The position numbers and the translations under genes were made by a program. Below the pieces are notes generated by a model, which worked only from the letters and a program-made list of their open reading frames with translations, was not told where the DNA came from and made no database searches. A stretch of DNA of 63,968 nucleotides, the filler included, from Choristocarpus tenellus KU-1152 (Eukaryota > Protista > Phaeophyceae): assembly GCA_964200185.2 (NCBI GenBank). It is 7 parts of 7 records of this genome, joined end to end, with 100 filler letters (N's around TTAATTAATTAA, not from the genome) between each part and the next. Parts side by side here need not be neighbours in the genome. Positions count along the whole stretch, not along the records: positions 42,578 to 59,172 come from CAXNAD020000805.1; 6 more parts are not named here. One strand, given 5' to 3'. Below are positions 42,578-59,172 of this stretch, piece after piece (position 1 is the stretch's first letter; each line of letters opens with the position of its first letter).

Positions 42578-44556
42578 AAGAGAGGCGGTAGGACCTCCAG
42601 CCTTCTATTTCATCACCCTAACCCTAGACTTGATGGGGTGTTGCAAAATATTCTAGTTTGATACCCATTCTGCAGGTGATTTCCCTTTGGATTTGGTCCA
42701 GGTAGGCAGATGGAAAAGGACGGTGCACCCACTCTTATATTTCACACGTACTGTCAAATGACCTGAAAATCACTACAGGGACACAAAGGCCCCAAATAGA
42801 CACCTGACCCCCCCACTAAGATATATGACCTAGAAATAGGGTGGATTGCTACATTCCAAAATGTTTTCAATTAATTTATAAAATGATGCTTCCGATGCTG
42901 AATTCATGTCAATGTTAACCCTTGTCTCACTTCTTCAAATTGCAAAACTGCACCACCCGGCAACAGGATGTGTAACCACCTCCCCATGTTATTTCTATTC
43001 AGGCAATTCTCATCCCAAGTTCCTCCAGGTTCCTCCTAATGATCTCAGCAACACCTACACCATCTTTCTGGTACAGTCAGTACCAGAGGTTTGCCACTGA
43101 GTCCAACCCGCACACACTCGTGGAGGACCTACTGTTGTCTTCTCCAGACAACAAATCCATAGGGACACATCCCACACCAAGTTTTGACAAGGGACAGGAT
43201 TCATTCTGTGTGTGTGGAGATACAATCGTTGGGAGGAGAGTATGTGGTGTTAAGTGTCATTGATGAAGAAAGACTTGTATACTCCATGGGTTACAAGGGT
43301 GAATGTGGTGATAAGTCCTTGCCCCGAGGGCCACGGTTGCACATGCTAGAGGAAGAGGTTGAGAAGGGCACCCAACTGCTACAAGAGAAGGAGAAGAGGG
43401 ACCGTGATACACTCAAAGCTCAATGCAAGGAGTGGCAGGAACGACATAGCCAGAAGGAGAATGGGAGGAGGACGAGGAGAACCAACATTGGAAGTTGTGC
43501 CCATGTTGGAGGAGACTACTCTTCTTCACAGTGCTGAGGCCACGAGACCCCACTTCTGGTTGAACAACAGTCAACGAGAGCCGTTTATTGCGGTTGTGGA
43601 CTCTTTTCTTTAGCCATCTCTTTATTGAGGTTCTTGTATTTTTATTGCGTTGGCCAATGAAATTTCCAGAAAACCCCTCATCCTTCTCCCTCATTTTTAT
43701 CCTTTCAAAAACAACACAGCAGATACATTGTAGCATGGTTGGTAATTCAGGAATGCTGAACACATGTTGGGTGTTATTACTGGCAAAGGCCAAACCAAAC
43801 GACAAAGCAAAAATGGAGAGCATCAAGCAGGTGGGTCCTGAGCTGCTACTCATGCGTCTTGGGTGCTTTCTACACATACTGCACTTGGCCATCCATGCAT
43901 GGTTGGAGAATTGTTCGTTTATGGACAAGATGGGAACGGGAAGTTGGGAAAAGTGGCCCTCTGATCACCTCGTGGCACTCCAGCTCTTCCTTAAGAGTCT
44001 TGGCAACCTTTGCTTGCTCAATCTCAATTGCAGGTAGAATAAGGTTTGGGTCAAAAGACTCAAGCTCCTTCCGAAGATTGTCAACCTTGATCTTCTCCCT
44101 TTGAGGTTATTTCTGGTCGTTTTCCTCCCTTTACTTTTGGAACTCCACCTTCAAACATTGCAATCTCTTCTTCAGGCACTGCTGACATCTCAGAGTGTTG
44201 ATGATAATTTTCAATACGAATATCAACCTCACGGTTCTTAGCAGATTAGTCTCTTCGTCTCTCATCTTCCTTATCAAACAATATAGTCACAGTAGCCTCT
44301 GAAGTGTTTTGCTCCTTCCTTGTCACAGTGGCCTCCATCATTGTGAAGGCTTGCTCAACTTTGCCCTCCACCTCTGCTTTCACTTTTTCAATATTCACTT
44401 CACTCACTGTACATAGTTTCTTTAGGTTATCTGACATCTGTTCATAAATGAATGAATTCTCCTGATTGTTGTGTGGGTGTGGGAAGTTTCACTTTTCCTA
44501 CTGTGATATAGAAAGAAGTGTGATCAGTGTGATCAGAAAAGTGCCTTCTGCTGTTC

Positions 44557-45874
44557 ATGTGTCTTAGTCTTCCATACACACCATTTTATTTTGGTGCACT
44601 TTACTATTGTGCTGTGACTATCATTCCCTACAAGAAGTTCTGGTTAAGAGACTATTTCAAAATGCGTGCTTCATCAGTTTTTGTGTATGATGACAATCTC
44701 CAAAATACCAAGTATGGATTTCAAATCTTGGACCTCTACACACACATCCTCCCATACGTTTTTGACAAAATGTCCACCCCAAAAAGTGTGATTCTCATAA
44801 ATTTTATTAAATCCGAAAGAGAGCAAAATGCAAAAAGGGATTCAATAAGTGGTGTTTTGCTACATTATTTCAAGTCCCAGATTGATAAATTGGGGAAAAA
44901 CAGGTATCATGTGAATAGCATGGTTCTTTGGTTCAACTTCACCACTGAGCACAAACTCATTCTGTCTAAACTGGTCCAAGCTGGGGATCCATGGAAGGCC
45001 CCACACTCGAGCATGGGACAAGATACGGGAGGAGTCCCTTCATATTTTCTATTTTCATGTTTGTGTGGGGGCATTGAGGGGAGACTTAATGTTCTCTTGA
45101 AGGGGTCAGAAGAGTTGGATGACACATTCACTCATAGGAGTGGGACCACAGAGAAGTTTGATCTGGAAGACCTCTACTCGAGATCTGGAGTAGTGGATTA
45201 CGCAAGAGAGTCTAAGTCGGAAGAAATGAAAAGACTGAGGACACTCGGAGAGGCAGGAAGTTTGAGGTAGAATATTCCACCATGATGAAGGCCAAGTCTG
45301 GACGGACGATGTCTCGGTGAATTAGTAATGATGAAGGGAAAGCTGGAGGTAAGGACAAGGGGGAAGGCAAATGCCACCAATTCAGGTACTGATGCCGACA
45401 GACTAAGTTCAGTCTCCTTTTCCCTATCAATGACAAGGAAGAAGCAGACTGTGCCCGTCCGCCTCTATAACCACAAGCCAGAGAGTGGTTGGAAACCCAG
45501 ATTTCAAGTCTCTTTGTTTTCTGAGAGTGGCGGAGGGGATGGAAGGAGGGAGGAGCTGGAACGAAAAGGAAGTTTCACCACGAGGAGGTGGAGCTCTAGA
45601 AGGAAACTATGCAGCAGGAGTCCAAGAGGAGCAAGGATCTATCTACAGGAGGATATGAATGAGGAGGGCGTTTTCCACCACCACCAACCAGCATGAGGAC
45701 ATGGTGAGGGAGAGGTTGGAGGAGAGGGGGAAGAGGGAGAGAAAGGGTGATTTGGACAGGATGGAGAGGGAGAGAAGGGACAAGTTGGACAGGGAACCGA
45801 AGTTGGATGAGAGGGTGGAAAGACAAAAGGTGAGAAGCGGGAAGGTGATTAGCATAAGACCACGGCAAACATGA
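44557..45874 (+). other. Intronless broken ORFs (237 aa plus charged tail), probably a retroelement gag relic
   Basis: Long, CpG-poor open frame with no splice pattern and no recognised domain. Confidence 0.25.
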
Positions 45875-46107
45875 TGTATGCCTTTATTGAGGGGGTGAGT
45901 AAGAAGCTGAGTTAAACTGAAGTGTTAACTGAAGTTTTGCACAGGTATGAGAGATTGATTTGTTGCGACCCCTTGGTTTGTGTTGAGAGTTTGAGGCATG
46001 TGTGTGTGTCTACAAGAAGCAAACAAAAACTTGTGGAACATAAAAAAAACTGAAAAAAATGGACATCTTCTCACTTCCCTGTCAAAATAAAATAAATTAT
46101 CACTTGC

Positions 46108-47193
46108 GAGTCAAACCATCTGAGAGGAGGCGGGTTGCATTGCAAGGATCCCGAGGAAGGGCAAAAAGAAGCAATTTTGTACAAGTCCAGAAATAGGTCG
46201 AATATCAATTCTGTGAACACTATTGTGCACATAAAGCATTGAAATAAAGCGTATTGCACAGGGGAAGAAAGATGGCTTAGAATGCACAAGGGCCCAAACT
46301 TGCCCGTATCTTGATTGATTTAGCTCTTGTGTGCATTTCCTGCTCATAAAGTACAAAACAAGACTAGGTACTGGTAGTCCACATAGATGTTCTACATCTT
46401 CATGGCACCACAAATTTGTTTGAGACTAGAGACAAAGCTCTTCCACTTTTGCATTATTTCTGAACAAATCATAGCAAAAAGATGTATATGGCCCTCCATT
46501 GTTGTGAAGGTAGTCGGTATGGAGTAAGAGGGATGAGTAAATTAAAAGTTGAGGATCAGGGTTGTGGTTTTGAATCAGAAACTGATGGAGAGTGTTCTAC
46601 AATGAGTCATGAATGTATCCTAAGGATCTGCCTTTTGACACAGTTTGTTGTCATAGGATAATGGTGTGGAGTTAGGTTAAGTGGATTAAAATTGTGAGTA
46701 AGCTGTAATAATCAAGTGAACATCTTGTGCTGTCGAATCTGCAGATATGGTAGACATTTTTTGTATGTTGTTGAGGCAGGGCCGTTGATGAAGTTCACAA
46801 TCTTCTCTATCAGTGAGTGTATAGGATTATTGCAATGGGTGATAAATGACATTCCAGAAGCCCAACGTGATATCTCATTTTCTGCTCTCGAGTGAGAACA
46901 GGAGTAACATACTAGTAATAAAATGTGAGGATGTTTGAGCCAAACCAATTGAGATGCGGCAAGTTTGGACCCTTTTACATTTTAAACCTTCCTTCTACCC
47001 CTGTCCAATACACTCTATTTCATTGCTTTATGTGCACAATAGTGCACACAGAATTGGTATTCGCTCTTTCCACGCACAAAGTGATACCACTATCCAGCAA
47101 AGACTCTGCAATTGCACAAAATGACAAAAAAATTTGCCCTTTCTTGAGATCCTTAAAATGAAACCCGTGCCTACCTCTCAGTTCGTTTGACTC
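46108..47193. mobile_element. 1.09-kb foldback/TIR element with diverged inverted arms of about 180-200 bp
   Basis: GAGTCAAACCATCTGAGAGG...CCTCTCAGTTCGTTTGACTC. The arms translate to near-identical peptides on opposite strands (PVQYALFQCFMCTIV / PVQYTLFHCFMCTIV). Confidence 0.75.
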
Positions 47194-48411
47194 TTTTTTT
47201 GTTTCATTATTTCTACCTTACATTATTGAGATGAAAGAATTAGGGGCCATACATTGCAAAGCACTCAGTGATGAGGGCTACACCCCAAAGTACTCCACCA
47301 TTTTGCCACCATACAGGCAGGTATGGATTCTGTTCAAGAGAGCCCTTATTGCACACACCTTGCCGATGGGTTGCAGGTGCAGGTTGAATTCTGCTTACCG
47401 CAAGGAACGCCAAACATGTTGCAAACCAGTAGTACAAGACCAGGTCATGTGTTTCATTCACGAGTTGAGGCTCGTAACTGTTGAAACCTGGGATTTAATG
47501 AATCGTTCTCTTCTACGGTGGCAGGTTGGTTGTGATGAAGGGGTGCACAGTGCAATGAAGCACCAGTGAATTCATGCTGATGAATCTGATGACATGATGT
47601 GCAGAGTCTGAGGTTATTTGGTAAGATGTGGGTATTCCTTGAGACGCTCAAAGAAAGAAGTACATGCTCTGAGTAGAAGGTTGGCACCTTGTGAAAAAGG
47701 ATTTATCAAGGTGTTATTTTTACTGGGAATATATTGCATCTTGGTGTGTAGGGGTACACTTAGTACAGAGTGAACTGCAAGTGTAAGTAGGGGCAAAGAC
47801 AACCAAAGAAAAAATAATAATCAAATGTGAGAGGGAACTGATGATTGTGATGTGAAAATAAAAAACTAAGAAACAAACTTGAATCAATATCTAGAACAAT
47901 TCATATGGCACATACTATGCTTGTATGTTTCACAGATGTCGACTGTTCCATGGTTCCTATCCACTATGATTTTCTAACAATAATTGATGATGCTATGATG
48001 AGGTACTAATGATGTAAACGTGACTAACGACCAGTTCCAATGTGCGAATCAGCAGTAAGTATGAACTGGTAATACTGTATCGTATCAAATATACAGAAGA
48101 GATGAGTAGTCTATGTTTTAACATTTGTCAAAATGGAACCGACTCCCCTCCCAACCTATAAAGTGTTTTAACTCTTGAACCAAACTCGTATGTGCCTTTG
48201 TAAAGGGTGCTTCGTCTGTCCATATCTTCTTACCAACTAAAACCTCCATAACAATATCCAATGAGGGCAACTGTGTTCGAAAACAAACGTCCTTCACGTT
48301 GACATATCCCCACTGCTAGTCCCTAACTCCTTCAAGGAACGATATGTGTGTCGCCAAAGTTTAATCGGAGAGGAGCCATTTTCAGCATTTAGAAGAATTT
48401 CGGTTCTGTGA

Positions 48412-51400
48412 ATGGGTTTGCTTGGAATAATCTGGGGTCGGATCAAGCACGTATTCGGAGTGAAGCAAGAGAGGACAAATATGGACAAAAATACAGAATG
48501 GAGGAAGGGCAGGCGAAGGACCCTAAAGAGAATAAAAACTCATATTAACTCGTTCGAGAGGTCTCTAATTTTTACCGCTAAGAGGAAAGAGTTCCTGGAC
48601 AAGGCGCACAAGAAGCGAGTGTTGCTTGCACGATTTCGCACACTTCAGAATCTGAGGAGAAAAGGGAAATTCGTGAAGTCGGCAGTACGAGAACTTTACC
48701 CCGAGGTACCCCATCGCTTTTTTTTACGTGCATGAAACTGACCTCCTCGATGACCACTGGTTCATACTGCCGCCACCCAAACCGTCAATTGGGGTTGCGG
48801 ACCTATGGAAACATGATATCAAAGAAAAAAAATGATCGTACACCACAGGAGTACAGTTCTAGAGGCCCAAGATCGTGTGCTTGGCAACAACAAGTCCCTG
48901 CGTCTGAGTGAGATGCGACTTTATACATAAATGCATGTCTGGAGATGCACTTGCAGGGCATGGTAGGTCTTTTCAAGGCTCCCATCGTAGAGTTTGACGG
49001 CCTATCTTGCATATTGTTCTCTGAGATATTATATATATATATCTCCATGTAAAAAAAGAGCAACTCTATCCATGGACCAAGGCTAGGCACAATTCTCATT
49101 CTATTCCACTTGTGGAAAATCGTGGTGTAGGAAAAGCCAATTCAAGAATATCTACTGTTTCAAATAAAATAGATTGGACAAATTGCGTCAGGGTTGTCAG
49201 CTGACACCACATGTCAGCCTATCTCGACTCCATGAAGAAGCACTGTGCCATGTAGTGAGTGACCAGAGAGTGTATCCAACCTTTCCAGGTACAAGGGGCT
49301 ATCTTTGACCTTCTCTTTGATGAGTTTGAATGCTATGGAGCAGAGGACAACTGTTTGGCCATGTTCACCCTTGCCACATTCCTGGTGAGCCTCTTGTGTG
49401 GTCTTAACATGTATTCATAACAAAGCAAAAATGGGAGATGAGAGTTGTAAGGTAGAGATCTAAAACAAATGCTTAAAGACGAGGCATTGCTGATTTTCTT
49501 GGATTCCATCTTGTGAAGAGGTGATGGTGACCAGTGAAACGAGATTGGAGCCACCTTTTTTTATCTCTAGGATCAGGTGCCCCACTCCTTGTTGGTCAAT
49601 GCCATATTGAATAGGTGGTTTGCCCACTTCAAAAATATTGTCTATATTTCAATTTGCATCTTAGTCTATGATCCATTGAAATATGTTCTTAGGATGAATA
49701 GTGAAAGAGATAGATTTCAGACTGTCAAATTATCCTTCGAGCATAGACCATTTGTGATTGATATTTCCCAAGAGATGTTTCTATAACTGATCGTGGCGGT
49801 TATTGTCCGCAGTGCTTACTATTCCATATGTGAACAATGAATTCACACCCTGGGCATAGGTTTCCAATAGATCTATCTAGTTGGGTCAAAATACATATTT
49901 TTGCTCCATTTCTTTGTTGATGACCTATAATTATAACCTCTGATCTATGCTTAGTATTTCTATTCTGCAACTTACATTCAACTCCAGACTATCCAAAATT
50001 GTACCCTCTCCTGCTTGGAAGAAAGGCTCTTCATCCACTCATTGTGAAGGACATTGAAAAATGACGCCCCCCTTGTTCAAATTGGCACCAGACTTTCATC
50101 TACATTATTTTATGGGTTCAATATCTTCCCAATCAATAAACTTCAAATGGAAATAAGCAACTACCACGAGAGCAACTCATACTCCTGCAATCAGACCTTG
50201 GTATTTCCTGTCAAAATGTGGTTGTCTTGGTTCAAATCCTAGGACTACCCAAGTGTGTTTTGTGCAAGTATGTGAAATTTTTGAAGTCTTTGATTCATCT
50301 CCACCCCCATTATGTACTCAGTTGCAAATGGAAGAAGACTATGGATGATGATAATCAGCATTTTGGGGGGGAAGGTTTTTTTTCACAAGGGTAGTTCAAG
50401 TGAAAGTTGATGTCGTTGAAGTTCACGATACCTCTAAATATTTAAAAACTGAACTTAATACTGTATTCTCATTCTGAGCCTTTGTTGCCTACAGACCACA
50501 ACCGAAACGGCAAGCTTTTGCGATGAGGTCGACTTGGGTTTCTCTGTTTTTGATGTCGATGGTAGTGGAGATATCAGCAGGGCAGAGTTCGGGATGCTTG
50601 TGAAGGCTTCAACTACAGCAAGCAATTTCAAATTCCGGAATAACCTTGACACTGCTAGAGGCAGGTACGTCTGATGGATCTGGTCTTAGGCTTCAGACAA
50701 AATTGTCCCTTGATGGGAAATTTGAAATAATCAGCAGGGGTCCAGTCATGATTCATACTCCACCATCCAAGTGCTACAGTAATCAACATCCTATCATACG
50801 TTACCTGAATGTACTATTTGACATTGTAGATTGATTGCACTATTTTACATTGTAGATTGTACTATTGCGTTTTGAATAACCATGTATGCAGGAAAGTGTA
50901 AGCTAGAAACCTGGACTACTTTCAGGCACCAATACATCTCCTCACTTGTCAGGGAACACTTTTTGAAACTGTGCAAGCATGAAACTGCACCAGTGGTTGT
51001 GGAGGCATTTGATGCTGTCAAGAGATTCAAGGGAACAAAAAATAATTGCACAGATGAAGCACTCAACATATTTGAAACATATTTCAAGGATGGGGCCCAT
51101 AAACAGGTGTGCAAACCTTCAGGTCAATCCACACAATTTTGAGCAATCCACAATCTTACTTTTTTGGGAAATAGTTGAGTTTCCAAGCGTAAAAGAGATA
51201 TATAATTATATGTTTATCTTGTGAGACTTAAAAATTTCTTGTCCAAGGAACTGTGGAGATATTGACACATTTTCAACCCTGATAACATCACTCCACATAA
51301 GTAGTTCCACAGGGTAACTTCCAACCGCTACAGAGAGCTGCAAAGTAACATACGTAGGCATTCAATGGTACTCTTGGCCACCCTTGCAGCACTAAAGATT

Positions 51401-54089
51401 CCCGTTCCTCAGAGAGCTCAAGGCTTGTGTCAGTCTATTTGCTGATGGTGCTAGTATTTTTTTACTTTTTTTCTTGGGTTTCCAATGCTTAAGAGGCTAC
51501 TCTTTTCTTGAGTAATAAATATTCTAGCTGGGACAATTGATATAATATTCCTTCTCTTTATTTGAGGCATCTAGTCCTTACCCAGTGCTTGGTTAGCCTT
51601 TGTAATCTTTTCATCATTGGCGCTATCATATCCTGCTGCTGCTAAGAGGATGGCATACACCATTTATATGTGGATGTGGACCTACTCTATTTCTTGAGGT
51701 CCCATTCCCATTTATTTGTTTCTGTGTGCCTTTAACATTCTGTAGCTTCCAAGTCAGAATTACTCATTGCCTCTGGAAGAGGCTCAACATTGCTTACTCC
51801 TTTCTTGACTATTGCTTCCTGCTGTGGCCTAACAATGTACCCACTGAACCCAGTATAAATTGAGCAGTATCTAGCCCCTGTTGATGATGGCAGTGCACTC
51901 ACAGATGTACCAATGTATGGGAAGAGAAAAATTTGTCCCTCACATTGTCTCACAACTTGTTTATGAAGGATAGATCTGCTTTGCAGTCTTTGTCCCCTTG
52001 GCAGTTAGTAGACCACTCTACTGCCTAGAAGCCGATGTTCAGTCATTCATTGACTGGTTTTCACAAAACACATATTACCATACTGTTCAACTTGTCTGTG
52101 TCTACCATTTCCTCATTGATTATGACAGGATTGCCATTCACATCCATCCTGGCAACTTGATCATTGTTATTATTATTTCTTATTTTTTTATTATTAGTAA
52201 TCTTATTATACCATCTTCACTTTAGATTGGGCACTATCCCAACCCATGGTCAGAGGTACTACACACTGCACTACCTCTCACACTAAATTTACTCTGAGTG
52301 TTGCACTATGACTAATGGTGATGTCTCCATTCCTTGCTTCTTGTGTGTTGGGTTCAGCCATCCCACAGCTCATTGCTCAGCCTTCTGCCTCAAATCTTTA
52401 ACTGGACCCACCTAAGTGCTGTTCCACAATTAAGCCTTACAATTTTCTTCTTGGTCAGGTGTTTTTATGGTATATACAACAGATAGGAGGATAGTACAGG
52501 TGTACAATCTATAGTGCTTGTCACATGGACTAGGTAATTGAAACCAAATTTCCCTGAAAAGAAGTACGGTGAAAGTGAGGTTAGAACGTACAAATTCATA
52601 CAGGGAACTGCTTCCATAACCACTCAACCACAAGAACACTCATGACATAGATTGTTAGGGTCTGTGCCAAAAGCATTCCCCCAAAACATTGTAGAGTTAG
52701 TTGCCTGGAGATTTCATCTCCAACCATCTAACATTTCCTTGAGTTATCTCAAGTGTGCTGAGGTCATTCATATTGAAATGAGACTTCAACTTGAAATTAA
52801 TGAAATAAAGCCTCTTGGGAAATGTCTAGACCTGTGGGAATCACCTGCCAGAGATGATATCTATGGTTGATGTTTCGTCAAAATATAAAATGTCTCCCCC
52901 AGAGTGGATGACTTGCACCCCATTCCTCATTCAATTCTTGAAAATCTGAAAACAGGTCCTTGCCAGAAAGGTAAGATCTTCCCCTATGGCGCAACCCTCT
53001 TGAAATGAACTGATTTTCATAATAGTCTCGCCAATATATGGATAGGCCAAAAAATCAATATTGTGAATCCCCTTATCTTGATGATATCAACTGGAAATTC
53101 AAGAGGTGTATCCCCCACCTCTTGGTTTTTAGTCCTTGAGATGATAGGATTGATAGGATTGATAGTGATCTTGGAAACACTTCTACTTGGCAAAGTTTGT
53201 CCTCTGTTGCACTCCTGTGAGCTTCAGAACAATTATCGGTGTTGCAATCATTTGTTTCAAAATATTTTGACCATAGACCTCAACAGGATGAATTGATACA
53301 TAACCCATCTCCATGTGTTTGTATTTCCATCAGCTGGAAGGCTTGTCCACTGATGCGAGTCTGAAGATGGGGGACGAACTTCAACAGGCAGTCGCTGGTA
53401 AAATGCCAATACAGTGGAATTTTTTTGACAAGGCCCTAGTAGAGGTGTGTAAAACGTTTCATAATTCGTGATCGCCCAAGAGAATTATCATTGAGGTTGT
53501 AAACCTGATCGAATTTACCTAGAAACTTGTCACAAGTGAGTAAATTGATGAAAAGTTGTCCTGCACTTGAACATGTTGTGCCGCCAGCATGACCTTGATT
53601 AACTATTGGTCATTATTTCCTGTCTTTGTGCAATAATCAATAATCAATAATCAATAATCAATGCGAAACTTTTAAATTTGAATCCTCTTGTACCATGCGC
53701 TTGTCAAGGTTTTGGGACATCTGGAGAAGGAATGTTTTGTTCGTTTTAAGGAAAACTCGCTTGAATTTCTTAACAAGACAAACCAATTGTTTGATATGGT
53801 GGATGCAGATGGAAGGTGAGAAAAAAACCATGCCAAATTATATGAGGATAATTCAATAAATAAGTGCAACCTTTTTTCCTTGACAGTTAACCATTTATGG
53901 ACTTCCATTTGCTTCCTTCCCTTGCCAACCTGTGTGTGTGTATACTGATTTGCCGATCCTTCTTTTCACAGTGGAGCGATTGTGCTGGAGGAATATATGG
54001 CATGGGCAAAAGAAAATCAGGACTGTATTGAGGGGATGTTTGACTTTCCACACACATCAGAGACAAGAGTTCAACCGTTTGACCGATAG
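48412..54089 (+). CDS. EF-hand (NCS/calcineurin-B-like) protein with inserted RGS domain, 349 aa; exons 48412-48705, 49289-49384, 50495-50664, 50953-51106, 53334-53444, 53709-53815, 53972-54089
   Basis: Seven phase-consistent GT-AG exons sum to 1050 nt. EF loops DVDGSGDISRAE and DADGSGAIVLEE. Between them: FRNNLDTARGREHFLKLCKHE..AVKRFK..EALNIFETYFKDGAHKQ..FFDKALVEVLGHLEKECFVRFKEN, which follows the RGS helix pattern. Confidence 0.85.
51700..53250 (+). mobile_element. Gypsy-like LTR retrotransposon relic in intron 4 of the EF-hand/RGS gene
   Basis: Zinc knuckle CFLCVGFSHPTAHC (CX2CX4HX4C) at 52335-52376; RT motif PRVDDL at 52898. Boundaries approximate. Confidence 0.6.
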
Positions 54090-54759
54090 TGTGAAAGTGC
54101 ATGCATCGTTTGTGGGGGATGGTGAAAGCAACCCAGAAAAAGTTCAGAACAAGGCAGGGGACAAACTTGCCATGCTCTTTTAATTAACACTCTACATGCA
54201 TTCTTCAAAGTGGAAGGAAATAAGAGTGTTAATGACGTTAATGACATTTATGAACAAGCCTTCACAGCCTGGCATCACCCAGCTCGAGTACATTAGATAT
54301 CCATAGTTCAGATATGAATGTAAGTGTGTCAGATTGGCAAGACGTTTCTGGCAGGGTAGGCGGTTCCTTCAACAGTGTTGTGTGTCTGTGTTTACTTCTG
54401 AGCGACATTTTGAGACTAGAGAAACATTTTGACATGTGTCAGTACATACGTACTGCAGATGTGCATACATACATAATACAGACTACCTTTTTCAAGCCAG
54501 CAAGCCAGCAATTAACAGAATTGATATGGGAGCAATGTATGTGTACATGCTGGTTTCATTCTTGTGTTCCAAATTCCACCCTAATTGAAGGGAGGATTTT
54601 GTTGAGGCTGCACAATAGGGTTGGGAATGTGGATATGAGTGGGAGGGCGGAGGTCAGCAAAAAAATGCAGGTTCAACTAGTGCAAATCACAAGTTTCTGC
54701 TCACCCATGCGAGGGAGCAGAGTGGGAATCAGAACTATGCCAGTTTTGTCCATTACAAA

Positions 54760-54890
54760 ATGAGGTACAAGAGCCCTGTGGGTAGCTTAAAAGGATTGGT
54801 CCTTGTAGTGTGCCCTGCACATTACATATGTGGACCACAGAAAGCTGATCCCCTGACCAAAGGCCTCCTGCTCACTCACAACTGACACCT
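54760..54890 (+). mobile_element. Copia RT/RNase H relic
   Basis: YKSPVGSL (YRSxVGSL-like) followed by QKADPLTKGL (QxADxxTKxL-like). Confidence 0.55.
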
Positions 54891-55618
54891 TGATAACAAG
54901 CAGGGAGACCATTCACTAGGGCATGCACTTGTCAAGAAAGAGCCTTGATCGGGTCCTGTTCACCTAGAATACTGGGTGCAATTCGCGTAGAGGAGATTAT
55001 GATGCTCTGTTCCACAACCACTTAAGTTCAGTGTACTGTACTGTAATTAAGTAATTTAAAGCGATGAACATCTCATAAAACCAGTATGTACAATAAAATG
55101 GAAGTATCCAACTATCATTGTATCTTGATTCTAGGGTTAAATTATTCTCCGCTTTCAGGGGGGCTCAGTGGAGGGTGTCAAATTGACATATGCTGACAAA
55201 ATATTCTTTGAGGTTCTCTGCAACACTTAGGGACCTTGAGATTTTATTCTTCACCCTCACCATAAATACTGTCAGCTGATGCCGAAAGGTCCCTGATGAC
55301 TAACTGTTCTCAGACAACAAAAAGAGTTCTGTAACACACATGAAAAAAAAGGTTGAAATCAGGAGGGTTATGCTGTCTGCTCACAGTTTCACACATCATC
55401 TGTTGAAGAGACTAATGATGGTTGTCAGGTCTTGCATGTGTGCTTGTGTCAAACACATGCACAATCCATGATGTGTAGCCAATTAACTGAATCTTGGACC
55501 AATTCTTACCAGTTGCATCTGATCACACACTACCAGCCCTTGTTGTAGTGCATACCATACCATACCGTGTTTTTTCCAAAAATTGTTTTAGCGTGCCGTA
55601 TTATATAGTTGTTAAAAA

Positions 55619-55773
55619 TAGTTCAATTGATATAAATCATTCTGGGATAGCCTTAATGGAAATTTTATTTGAACCAGATATAAGATCTCCTTATGAGGCT
55701 GGAGAATATGTGCAAAAGTTGCATAGCTTGTTATATAAGTTATATTAGATCTTGTGAGGGTAATATGGATCAG
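55619..55773 (+). pseudogene. gatB: Bacterial-type gatB fragment (short copy)
   Basis: [38 protein letters not shown], then frameshifted [11 protein letters not shown]. Confidence 0.85.
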
Positions 55774-56775
55774 CAATCTTCTGCTTATCATTTTAGTTAC
55801 AGGTCTGGTATGGTGCCTAGATCTGTTACAATTCAGCAACTTGATTAGGGGGGGTTGAAGACACACGTCATGATCTCTCTAATGACATACATCAGTGCAG
55901 ACACGTATCAGTGCAAGCAAGTACGTTAATAGATGAGATGTCTGTACAGTATTTTTATGGTAAATCCAATGGTTGCAAAGTCTTCCTCATCAACCTTCAT
56001 TGATGGCCTCCAATTCCATTTACCTATTTACTATAAGATCTTCCCCAAAAGTGTTAAATTTCCTTTGGGATCGCACATGATTGCTATTCTGGGCCATAAA
56101 CGTCATTTATGGCACCATCTCCATTGACATTGCTTCTACAGGAATGTTGGTGGCGTAACATCCCCAATAGTTGGTGACCTCTTGCACACTCTTTCTCCTT
56201 ACCTAACACGAAAAGGTGCCTGTTGACTCAATGCAATAAAGACCAAAGTTGCAAGTTGCGATGTTGTCACGATTTCCAGAAAAATCATTGGCTCTTTGAG
56301 TCGTGTCTTAATGAGTTTTTTTTGTGAGTTATAGACGCGAGGGACTTTTTAGAAATTGAAGGGGAAAAAAAAACGTGGTAAAGCCAATTAGTATTCCACG
56401 GTTCGTTCCTACACCAATAACAGTCACTAATTCCATAAAATATTTATTTGTCCTTCCAATTTCTCGTCTTCTTTCACATAGATATATTTCACAATAGATA
56501 CCTTACATAGAAACCAGGAGAGATCGTAAGACACAACGGTCTTTGGTGAAGGACAGATTGGAATCCTCAAGATTGCAAGTGCTAGTCCGCAGTGCGGGTA
56601 ACTGGCACACAGTTGATATTTCCACATCATGGATGACCTTACCCTACATGCATGTATCAAATCATTTTTTCCCTACGCGTTCCTTGAACAAATGACCATA
56701 TTACTGAAATGATATGTTAACCATTACAATAAGAATGTTTTTACCAAGGGCTGTTAAAAATTCATTGATGGAGCG

Positions 56776-57888
56776 CTGACCAATCTCAACATCAAACAAT
56801 CTTGCCTGATCAACTGCACCACTGCTTTCAATAAGTTCAACTTGTCTTATCACTTCATATTCAATGACTTAATATTTTTTATAGAATTTAAATTCTTGAT
56901 CTCACATCTAGTATCAACATTATCACCAGGGCGTCTAATCGAAACATTAACGTCACAACGCATCATCGATCCCTGATCCATATTCTAACGTAACAAGCTA
57001 CGCAACTTTTTTACGTATTGTCCAGCCTCATAAGGAGATCTTGTATCTGGTTCAGATAAAATTTCCATTAAGGCAATCCCAGAACGATTTAAATCAATTA
57101 AGCTATATACTCATGGTTGATCATGAATACTTCTACCATCTTGTTCTAAATGAACGACTAATTCTTATATTTTTTTCTGTTCATCTTCAGTTTGAATATT
57201 TAAATAACTATTCTGTGCAATTGGTATATAAAATTGTGAAATTTGGTAAGCTCGAGGTTGTGCAAAAAGAGCTGTTCGAAGAGAGTTTTTGCTTTATGTG
57301 GTATGAATGAATTTATTAGCAGAGTGAGCAACATCCCTCGAGGTGGGCACCATCCCTCGAGGTGCGCACCATCCCTCGAGGTAGGGGGGTGCTCTGCCTT
57401 GTTATCTATTGCGCACGTCAGCAGACAAGTCAGAACATGTCTGTTTCAGTAGCACTACGTCACTCGTTCTGCACCACTGGTACTATGTCAGTCATCCTAC
57501 CTACTACATCAGCATCTTACATTAAGCAGCAATAACAAATTAACCTGTCGAGATTCGAACATATTACTCTAAGCGTACGGAAACAAGTGATTGACAATTA
57601 ATCCACTCAGTCAACATTTATGTTACGTAATACTGGTTACCAAACACAGAAGAACCTATAGACTACCAGCCTATATTGCACAGAGATATATCAGAAAAAA
57701 AACAATTCTTACAAAGATAGATAACTTACTCATTTCTACATTAAGTATCGATAAATCCTAGGCACCGCAGCGTCGATCAATGAAAATTTTATATTAGGTG
57801 TTGCACTGAATTCAGACGCAGTAGTTTTCTGAAGTGAATCCCAGTTTAGTATTGATATTATTATTTACCTGTTAAGCCGACTTGCATT
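56776..57888 (-). pseudogene. gatB: Rickettsiaceae-like gatB pseudogene (N-terminal half), interrupted by a solo LTR
   Basis: Ordered motifs: GLTGK**Y..IH, SEFSATPNIKFSLIDAAVP, KNCFFSDI[LTR][90 protein letters not shown]-rich, intronless, with stops and frameshifts. Confidence 0.9.
57259..57682 (-). mobile_element. Copia solo LTR (424 bp)
   Basis: TGTGCAA...TTGCACA ends; flanks GAGGT/GAGAT (4/5 TSD); reverse complement of the LTR at 58235-58607. Confidence 0.9.
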
Positions 57889-58234
57889 TGTGCAATATAG
57901 GCTGGTAGTTTGTAGGTTCTTATCTGTTTGGTAACCAGTATTATGTAACAGAAATGTTGACCGAGTGGATTAATTGTCAATCACTTGTTTCCGTACGCTT
58001 AGATCAATAGGTTGGAATCTTGATGGGGTGATTTCTTACTGCTGCGTGACTGCGTTGCTGTAAGTGGCTGACGCAGGACGACTGACGCAGCTACGACTGA
58101 CACAAAACGACTGACATAGTACCAGTTACGCAGAACGACTGACGTAGTGCGACTGACACAGACACGTTCTGACGTGTCTGCTGACGTGCGCAATAGATAA
58201 CGAGGCAGAGCACCCCCCCACCATCGAGGGATAG
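57889..58234 (+). mobile_element. 3'-truncated LTR of the same copia family
   Basis: Starts TGTGCAATATAGGCTGG; colinear with the next LTR up to CGAGGGATAG. Confidence 0.88.
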
Positions 58235-59172
58235 TGTGCAATATAGGCTGGTAGTCTATAGGTTCTTATATGTTTGGTAACCAGTATTATGTAATAGAAA
58301 TATTGACAGTGGACCAATTGTCAGTCACTTGATTCCGTATGCTTAGAGTAATAGGTTCGAATCTCGATAGGTTGATTTGATATTGCTGCTTACTGTAAGT
58401 GGCTGACGTAGGCCGACTGAGGTAGTGCTAGTAACACAGAACGAGTGACGTAGTGCGACTGACACAGACACGTTCTGACGTGTCTGCTTACGTGCGTAAG
58501 AGATATCGAGGCAGAGCAACCCCCACCTCGAGGGATAGTGCTCACTCCGCGAATAAATTAATTCATACCACATAAAACAAAAATTCTATTTGAACAGCTC
58601 TTGCGCAGGTTATGAGCCTCACAAGTATGGAAGCGGACGTACGTAAGCTGCCACTATGGAGTGGTGCGCGTGGGCATACAAGGGAGAAGTGGGCAGAATG
58701 GCGGATGGCGCTGGTGAGCTATGCGGGCGGCAAGGGATTATATGTACCGCATCCTCCAACCAGCATACCACATCCCCGCACCTCCTATGGCTGATACATT
58801 GTTTGGGGAACGCAGCGCGTACGAGGAGTACGTCAAGCATCGCTAGTCTTATGGTTCCTGCTGGGCAAAGCCACGAGGGGGGCTGCAGCGATAGTGGTCA
58901 GCACCCACGAGAATAACGGCAGCCCCGACGGGAGGGCAGCCTGGCTCGAGTTGGAGCAGATCTATGGAGGAATGCTGTGGTCCAGCGGCCCATGCAGCTC
59001 ATAGCTCTCGAGATGAAGCTGAGCGACATGTGCTGCTCGTCAGTGGAGGACGCTGCCGACTTCGTCATCTGTCTCGATACGTCTGGACAGAGTACGAGCA
59101 GCTGGAGGCGACCAAGGAGTACCACACCAAGAAGGGGGGGGGGCTCTGATCATCGCCATCAGGAACAGCATG
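58235..59172 (+). mobile_element. Ty1/copia element 5' end: LTR 58235-58607, PBS 58608-58618, frameshifted gag from 58612/58627 to the gap
   Basis: TG..CA LTR directly followed by GGTTATGAGCC (copia-type half-tRNAiMet PBS). Gag-like LPLWSG..KWAEWRMALVSYAGGKGL and AAWLELEQIYG. Confidence 0.85.

Follow-up and report, generated by a model that had tools for sequence, protein, structure and literature searches.

An RGS domain lying between two EF-hands in a putative calcium sensor of the brown alga Choristocarpus tenellus

Choristocarpus tenellus (KU-1152), a brown alga, encodes a protein of 349 amino acids (aa), CAM9226419.1, in which a regulator of G-protein signalling (RGS) domain lies between the third and fourth EF-hands of what is predicted to be a four-EF-hand body of the NCS/calcineurin-B-like type. 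The gene lies in the window, the whole stretch of 63,968 nucleotides (nt) analysed here, joined from parts of seven records of assembly GCA_964200185.2; positions 42578-59172 of it are contig CAXNAD020000805.1 (16,595 bp). The layout is conserved in two lineages of PX-clade ochrophytes, C. tenellus and Chrysoparadoxa australica. Placing a domain inside a paired EF lobe while both sites are retained is unusual. In the reading that we favour, with a probability of roughly 45%, the protein would be a membrane-tethered Ca2+ sensor whose C-terminal lobe gates a divergent, Gα-binding RGS domain. Judged from the sequence, Ca2+ gating of a G-protein regulator is plausible, where 'regulator' may mean a binder or a scaffold and not a GTPase-activating protein (GAP), because the contacts of canonical GAPs appear to have been replaced.

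Gene structure and domain order

The seven exons (Table 1) amount to 1050 coding nt, that is 349 codons and a stop, and the translation of every exon is identical to the database record (P0001), which NCBI names 'unnamed protein product' and annotates on the same contig with identical coordinates. Three sequence runs from one study cover the locus; two are unspliced and the third (X3) holds spliced contigs. Their joints omit 583, 1110, 288, 2227, 264, and 156 nt, all six with GT..AG ends, and contig depth is 70-160 over the exons vs about 12 over the introns. These joints are those of assembled contigs from a single run, the type of which is not on record. An in-frame TGA stands immediately 5' of the ATG, and a contig of exon depth extends about 350 nt upstream of it. 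The gene is expressed and spliced as modelled. An earlier note on this DNA, drawn from the sequence alone, had joined seven exons into one 349-residue frame; the six transcript joints and the identical NCBI protein bear this out, the exons do not belong to different genes, and the motifs that it quoted are all found in the protein. Its remark that the gene is absent from the open reading frame (ORF) track is true, but only because the gene is spliced, and the NCBI annotation already holds the same model.

Two other forms of intron 3, one with a GC donor at 50661 and an acceptor at 50892 (368 aa) and one with an acceptor at 50926 (358 aa), are ruled out by the transcript joint 50664>50953. No exon-skipping joint occurs among the spliced contigs of run X3, and no in-frame skip of exons would delete the RGS domain while keeping both EF loops.

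The RGS assignment, placed by the earlier note at about residues 176-291, is upheld by a Pfam match (PF00615) at aa 179-291 (E=1.4e-8, 35.6 bits vs a cut-off of 23.9, model positions 4-111 of 117) as well as by the structural match described below. Exon 4 alone, in a query that carried 20 intronic codons, still matches RGS at E=0.012. A protein search with exon 4, likewise carrying the intronic codons, led to the record P0001, on which the whole-protein analyses are based; its two other matches, both repeat proteins, are spurious. No RGS protein came up when the RGS part was searched by sequence against the PDB. The sequence matches in the PDB are generic EF-hand proteins (calmodulin, MICU1), none above the generic EF-hand level, and NCBIfam gives no match.

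Pfam places an EF-hand at aa 143-168 and another on a second stretch of the whole protein. Exon 3 alone matches EF-hand_1 at E=1.3e-5 and the C-terminal part alone matches an EF-hand at E=0.004. Both 12-residue EF loops are canonical and have D1, D3, S5, G6, I8, and E12 in common; ligand positions 1, 3, 5, and 12 are held in both loops and in both species. Position 9 of the EF4 loop is hydrophobic in the two species alike. The EF3 and EF4 loops stand 145 aa apart in C. tenellus and 136 aa apart in the Chrysoparadoxa homologue, against about 30-36 aa in NCS and CBL proteins, and the surplus therefore corresponds to one RGS domain. EF1 and EF2 lack Ca2+ ligands. EF3 and EF4 would bind two Ca2+, and the N-terminal lobe (EF1 and EF2) has probably lost Ca2+ binding.

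The first 95 residues carry 29 K/R vs 7 D/E (24 vs 7 in the homologue). The GxxxS myristoylation motif (PMC4415241) is missing, with no Ser/Thr at the motif position and no Gly2 in the homologue. Nor do the two proteins have a CBL N-myristoylation or S-acylation site, for there is no Cys within the first 60 aa and no conserved Gly2. The 14-aa EF1 of CBLs (15 aa in stramenopiles), with its Q-H/N-E motif (PMC4990929), is not found in the putative EF1 of either species. The Ca2+-dead N-terminal lobe (aa 56-135) is among the best conserved parts of the protein (55-67% identity) and yet has no Pfam match, which points to a conserved binding partner.

Table 1. Positions in the window of the seven-exon gene and of the domains that it encodes
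Feature	Position	Strand	Description
Seven-exon gene	48412..54089	+	349 aa, CAM9226419.1, Choristocarpus tenellus; predicted NCS/calcineurin-B-like four-EF-hand body, RGS between EF3 and EF4
Exon 1	48412..48705	+	aa 1-98: short hydrophobic N-terminal helix, polybasic stretch, long helix, degenerate EF1
Polybasic segment	48499..48546	+	aa 30-45; basic in Chrysoparadoxa too; putative membrane/phospholipid tether
Exon 2	49289..49384	+	aa 99-130: degenerate EF2, Ca2+ ligands gone
Exon 3	50495..50664	+	aa 131-187: EF3, EF3 exit helix, start of RGS
EF3 loop	50552..50587	+	aa 150-161; canonical: D1, D3, S5, G6, I8, S9, E12
RGS domain	50630..53759	+	aa 176-292, exons 3-6; PF00615 profile and RGS4 structural match
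Exon 4	50953..51106	+	aa 187-238: RGS helices 3-5
Exon 5	53334..53444	+	aa 239-275: RGS helices 6-7
Exon 6	53709..53815	+	aa 276-311: final RGS helix, EF4 entry helix, first half of EF4 loop
EF4 loop	53802..53993	+	aa 307-318, loop split by intron 6; D1, D3, S5, G6, I8, E12 retained
Exon 7	53972..54089	+	aa 311-349: EF4 exit helix, NCS-like C-terminal helix, tail, stop

Conservation in a second ochrophyte lineage

The earlier note had proposed a search for the same architecture in stramenopile proteomes, and C. australica has it. Its homologue (P0004) is a protein of 326 aa with 41% identity over 91% (E=1.7e-66) and the same order of parts. The RGS domain of this homologue scores 29.9 bits, above the Pfam cut-off, both of its EF-hands reach or approach theirs, and both loops are canonical. 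Identity varies along the chain: 23% in the N-terminus, 55% in the helix and EF1, 67% in EF2 (aa 100-135), 68% in EF3, 29% in the RGS domain, and 42% in EF4 and the last helix. The RGS, EF4, and N-lobe alignments between the two proteins each score far above 500 shuffles (for RGS against RGS, 105 vs a shuffled maximum of 51).

The Chrysoparadoxa gene has one intron, of 110 nt, after codon 31, which coincides with none of the six in Choristocarpus. The same layout with different introns means that it is not an annotation artefact; because no intron is shared, the architecture predates the present introns and was not exon-shuffled at them. Exon shuffling as the origin of the RGS domain was rejected on the further ground that the RGS domain and the EF4 loop are themselves interrupted by phase-2 introns, at codons 187 and 311 respectively. 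In Chrysoparadoxa the gene (L001 5001-6091) is flanked by genes for a cullin and a lipase-3; it has no neighbour in common with the Choristocarpus contig.

A wider family of RGS and EF-hand proteins is suggested by a cluster in the ESM Atlas with 61 members (313 aa; RGS in 100%, EF-hand in 97%), for which the two members with a record point to Haptophyta. This cluster, known by its shape and domain content and bearing an automatic name only, ranks first on either measure, features (0.92) or shape (TM 0.50/0.55, with 248 residues aligned in query 46-339), and it gives TM 0.45/0.49 against the AlphaFold2 model made here. Clusters of GCAP1, KChIP, and NCS-2 come next by shape, with CBL clusters also among the matches. 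Word-indexed protein searches, which cover proteins of 0.55-1.75 times the query length with shared exact 5-mers, found no relatives other than CAM9226419.1 itself and the Chrysoparadoxa homologue, in other brown algae or elsewhere; given these limits, the absence from other brown algae is only suggestive. Metagenome and viral contigs, within the limits of the scans made of them, yielded no relatives either.

Predicted structure

An AlphaFold2 model built from the two-sequence alignment of the Choristocarpus and Chrysoparadoxa proteins has a pLDDT of 62.5 and a pTM of 0.55. By region, pLDDT is 77-89 in EF1-EF3 except for one block at 63, 76-79 in EF4, and about 60 in the RGS domain. When it was compared with 48,161 chains (VIA-align), the top match was RGS4 (1agr_H; Z 8.4, 107 residues aligned, root-mean-square deviation 3.1, model 174-292). 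Further RGS-fold matches are RGS3, Axin, SNX25, and SNX13, joined in a second look by GRK2 (Z 8.7) and RGS16 (Z 8.3); matches to RGS and RGS-homology folds span Z 7.6-8.7.

Lobes of two EF-hands superpose across the RGS insert (69-80 residues, model 135-332). Residues 118-197 of AtCBL2 (1uhn) place 80 residues on model 136-330, polcalcin aligns over 69 of 69 residues, and the calmodulin N-lobe over 69 of 72 (Z 8.4). That continuous lobes fit across the insert means that EF3 and EF4 are paired in the model. With the insert skipped, entire sensors can be aligned too, within about model 62-347: Ncs1p (2l2e) at Z 7.8 over 153 residues (chain 23-187, model 66-347) and recoverin (1iku) at Z 7.6 over 148 residues. 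The Atlas's independent model likewise points to GCAP1 and KChIP. Taken together, the models predict four EF-hands in one globular, two-lobed fold of the calcineurin B/recoverin superfamily type. The earlier note's proposal of an NCS/calcineurin-B-like EF3-EF4 pair with an RGS domain in its loop thus finds support in the model and the homologue. It had also suggested predicting the structure to see whether the two EF-hands pair around an RGS bundle, and in the model they do.

Model helices run through aa 159-180 and 267-290/292-306, with no long linker between the EF and RGS domains. Modelling of aa 28-175 from one sequence gave a poor result (pLDDT 51) that matched nothing but long helices. 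The predicted architecture draws on the agreement of the hidden Markov model (HMM), the loop motifs, the homologue, and two models, and not on one score.

Proposed mechanism and its alternatives

In the mechanism that we propose, an RGS domain with adjacent N- and C-ends would have taken the place of the short EF3-EF4 loop with almost no linker, such that in the model the EF3 exit helix leads on to RGS helix 1 and, at the other end, the final RGS helix continues as the EF4 entry helix. The polybasic N-terminus would anchor the protein at an anionic membrane. Binding of Ca2+ would open the EF3/EF4 lobe and shift the terminal subdomain of the RGS domain, so that the Gα-binding face is exposed or reshaped; with no long linker between the domains, opening of the lobe should move this subdomain, which is part of the Gα face. 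The outcome could be Ca2+ feedback on heterotrimeric G-protein signalling through a non-canonical GAP or a Ca2+-dependent Gα binder. Since stramenopiles keep the complete set of G-protein components, with 47 RGS proteins in Ectocarpus (PMC3971589), partners should exist. Control of RGS4 GAP activity by Ca2+/calmodulin offers a two-protein precedent (PMC3368389). Fusions of a sensor with an RGS domain already occur in stramenopiles, as in the LOV-RGS protein helmchrome (PMC8017926), and a polybasic helix gives BcLOV4 its signal-dependent membrane binding (PMC6099885).

Several observations weigh against this mechanism. Confidence in the model is modest, with an overall pLDDT of 62.5, about 60 in the RGS domain, and an alignment of two sequences; Z scores of 8-9 are moderate, unrelated helical bundles reach nearly as high, and Foldseek found no significant match for the whole model. 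The RGS domain is the least conserved folded region, at 29% identity where EF1-EF3 reach 55-68%, and about nine residues at RGS helices 1-2 have been lost from the homologue. In RGS4, GAP activity requires contacts of Asn88, Asn128, and Asp163 with switches I and II of Gα (PMC8252600). In an inferred mapping, Asn88 corresponds to V202 (V in the homologue), Asn128 to E240 (M), and Asp163 to E283 (E). The mapping draws on the 1agr superposition, which has an offset of 114 residues, on HMM coordinates from the exon-4 search, and on the RGS4 motif as we take it to be. With these equivalents replaced and RGS conservation low, a canonical GAP is unlikely, which would leave a divergent GAP, a Ca2+-dependent Gα binder, or a scaffold that does not bind Gα.

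The last of these is somewhat less probable than the gated regulator, though a serious competitor: a Ca2+ sensor in which the RGS-homology insert has ceased to contact Gα and provides a scaffold or docking site, as the equivalent domains of Axin or SNX13/25 do, with a hydrophobic target groove in EF1-EF3 that would bind a kinase, a channel, or a flagellar protein. The replaced GAP contacts and the concentration of conservation in EF1-EF3 are what this reading would lead one to expect; GRK2-RH, Axin, SNX13, and SNX25 match the model within Z 1 of RGS4 and RGS16, and some RGS domains are known to have lost GAP activity (PMC3971589). However, RGS domains evolve fast in general (PMC3307776), those of Naegleria, another protist lineage, work as GAPs (PMC9283941), and conservation is fairly high in the final RGS helix, which contributes to the Gα face, with E275, V276, H279, K282, E283, F285, and F288 invariant between the two species. 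The protein might also be a constitutive RGS protein in which the EF body, carrying Ca2+/Mg2+ at all times, has a structural or targeting role and leaves the RGS face unswitched. Some EF sites of calcineurin B are structural, the hydrophobic position 9 of EF4 fits such a role, and the insert could be passively tolerated because the RGS termini are adjacent; even so, we consider this improbable, as both loops are otherwise canonical and retained over a long divergence, and the tight helical junctions of the model favour coupling.

An artefact, whether a fused or mis-annotated gene model, chance RGS-like helices, or a contig from a co-cultured organism, is the least credible explanation and is largely refuted. 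The contig is just 16.6 kb long with a GC content of 41.8%, lower than that of Ectocarpus, and the word-indexed searches found no relatives in other brown algae. Against this stand the six transcript joints, the independent homologue with different introns, RGS scores above the Pfam cut-off in both proteins, and an RGS-RGS alignment well clear of its shuffles. The nearest relative is another PX-clade ochrophyte, and a mislabelled host would leave the architecture untouched.

The gated regulator can be put in a broader evolutionary frame, which we hold tentatively: an old family of ochrophytes and haptophytes in which Ca2+ on the split EF3/EF4 lobe allosterically switches the inserted RGS domain on Gα. 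Such a single-chain G-protein brake would have been kept in C. tenellus and is apparently missing from other sequenced brown algae. C. tenellus belongs to the Discosporangiales, the earliest-branching brown algal order.

Novelty and implications

No description of an RGS insertion between EF-hands was found in the literature, where an entry in supplementary catalogues of RGS architectures may exist, and the main text of the Phaeoexplorer paper mentions neither RGS nor EF-hand. Protist RGS domains recombine often and freely (PMC3971589), so that a new fusion as such is unsurprising and the geometry of the insertion is the unusual part. In animals, Ca2+ and G-protein signalling are linked through separate proteins, such as calmodulin acting on RGS4. 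For a comparable link in algae, for example in the steering of flagellated cells, the Choristocarpus protein is a direct and testable candidate. The natural insertion of a domain into an EF-hand pair is also the design of engineered calcium switches, and the protein could therefore serve as a ready-made basis for tools that control G proteins with Ca2+. Were its RGS domain no more than a scaffold, the predicted interleaved fold would still lack a close match among solved structures.

Surrounding contig

Coding sequence on the contig has a GC content of 44.7%, and 48% at third codon positions. Downstream of the gene lie two decayed, intron-less gatB fragments in inverted orientation, at about 55560-55860 (+) and 56800-57170 (-), with 34-37% GC, stops, and frameshifts (Pfam GatB_N, E=3.7e-8); they look like a piece of a bacterial gene lodged in the algal genome. 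Intron 4 contains a multi-copy repeat at 52150-52520, with a summed contig depth of 355 vs 21 and many loose ends. Upstream, an annotated gene of 166 aa at 44687-45270 (+), without a Pfam match, lies inside a 237-codon ORF from 44557; a mobile element, now decayed, is its possible source. The stretch 57267-58602 consists of nested repeats, both direct and inverted, with units of about 350 nt that are 77-80% alike overall and have no Rfam match. A pair of inverted repeats resembling miniature inverted-repeat transposable elements lies at 46199-46326 and 46937-47063, separated by about 650 nt; its copies are 106-128 nt long and 84-86% alike.

Comparison with known systems

Proteins of the NCS family (NCS-1/frequenin, recoverin, GCAP, KChIP) resemble the predicted Choristocarpus protein in their four-EF globular body, non-binding N-terminal EF-hand, and C-terminal helix. 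The Choristocarpus protein differs in the roughly 110 extra residues, the RGS domain, between EF3 and EF4, in an EF2 that is also dead, and in a 60-residue basic extension in place of GxxxS. Among CBL and calcineurin B proteins, the EF3-EF4 lobe of AtCBL2 superposes on the model; unlike CBLs, the Choristocarpus protein carries the RGS insert, lacks the 14/15-residue Q-H/N-E EF1 (PMC4990929), and has neither an N-terminal Cys nor a conserved Gly2.

With the GAPs RGS4, RGS16, and RGS3 and the RGS-homology domains of GRK2, Axin, and SNX13/25 it shares the PF00615 match and, in the model, the RGS helical fold. In contrast to canonical RGS GAPs, its equivalents of N88, N128, and D163 appear replaced and its RGS domain is embedded within another fold. 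RGS3 reportedly has an N-terminal EF-hand, a single flanking motif, whereas in Choristocarpus a complete sensor is interleaved. GRKs show the reverse arrangement, a kinase inserted into an RGS domain (PMC3307776). In the Ca2+/calmodulin-RGS4 system Ca2+ likewise controls an RGS domain, but the sensor is separate there (PMC3368389), while here both parts form one interleaved polypeptide. Helmchrome and the fungal RGS-LOV proteins are sensor-RGS fusions too, found in stramenopiles and haptophytes (PMC8017926), yet they sense light and are fused end to end, in contrast to a putative Ca2+ sensor with an insertion. On its sequence and predicted fold, the Choristocarpus protein would belong to the RGS domain family and to the wider calcineurin-B/recoverin fold group, and it appears to be neither a CBL, nor a myristoylated NCS protein, nor a canonical RGS GAP.

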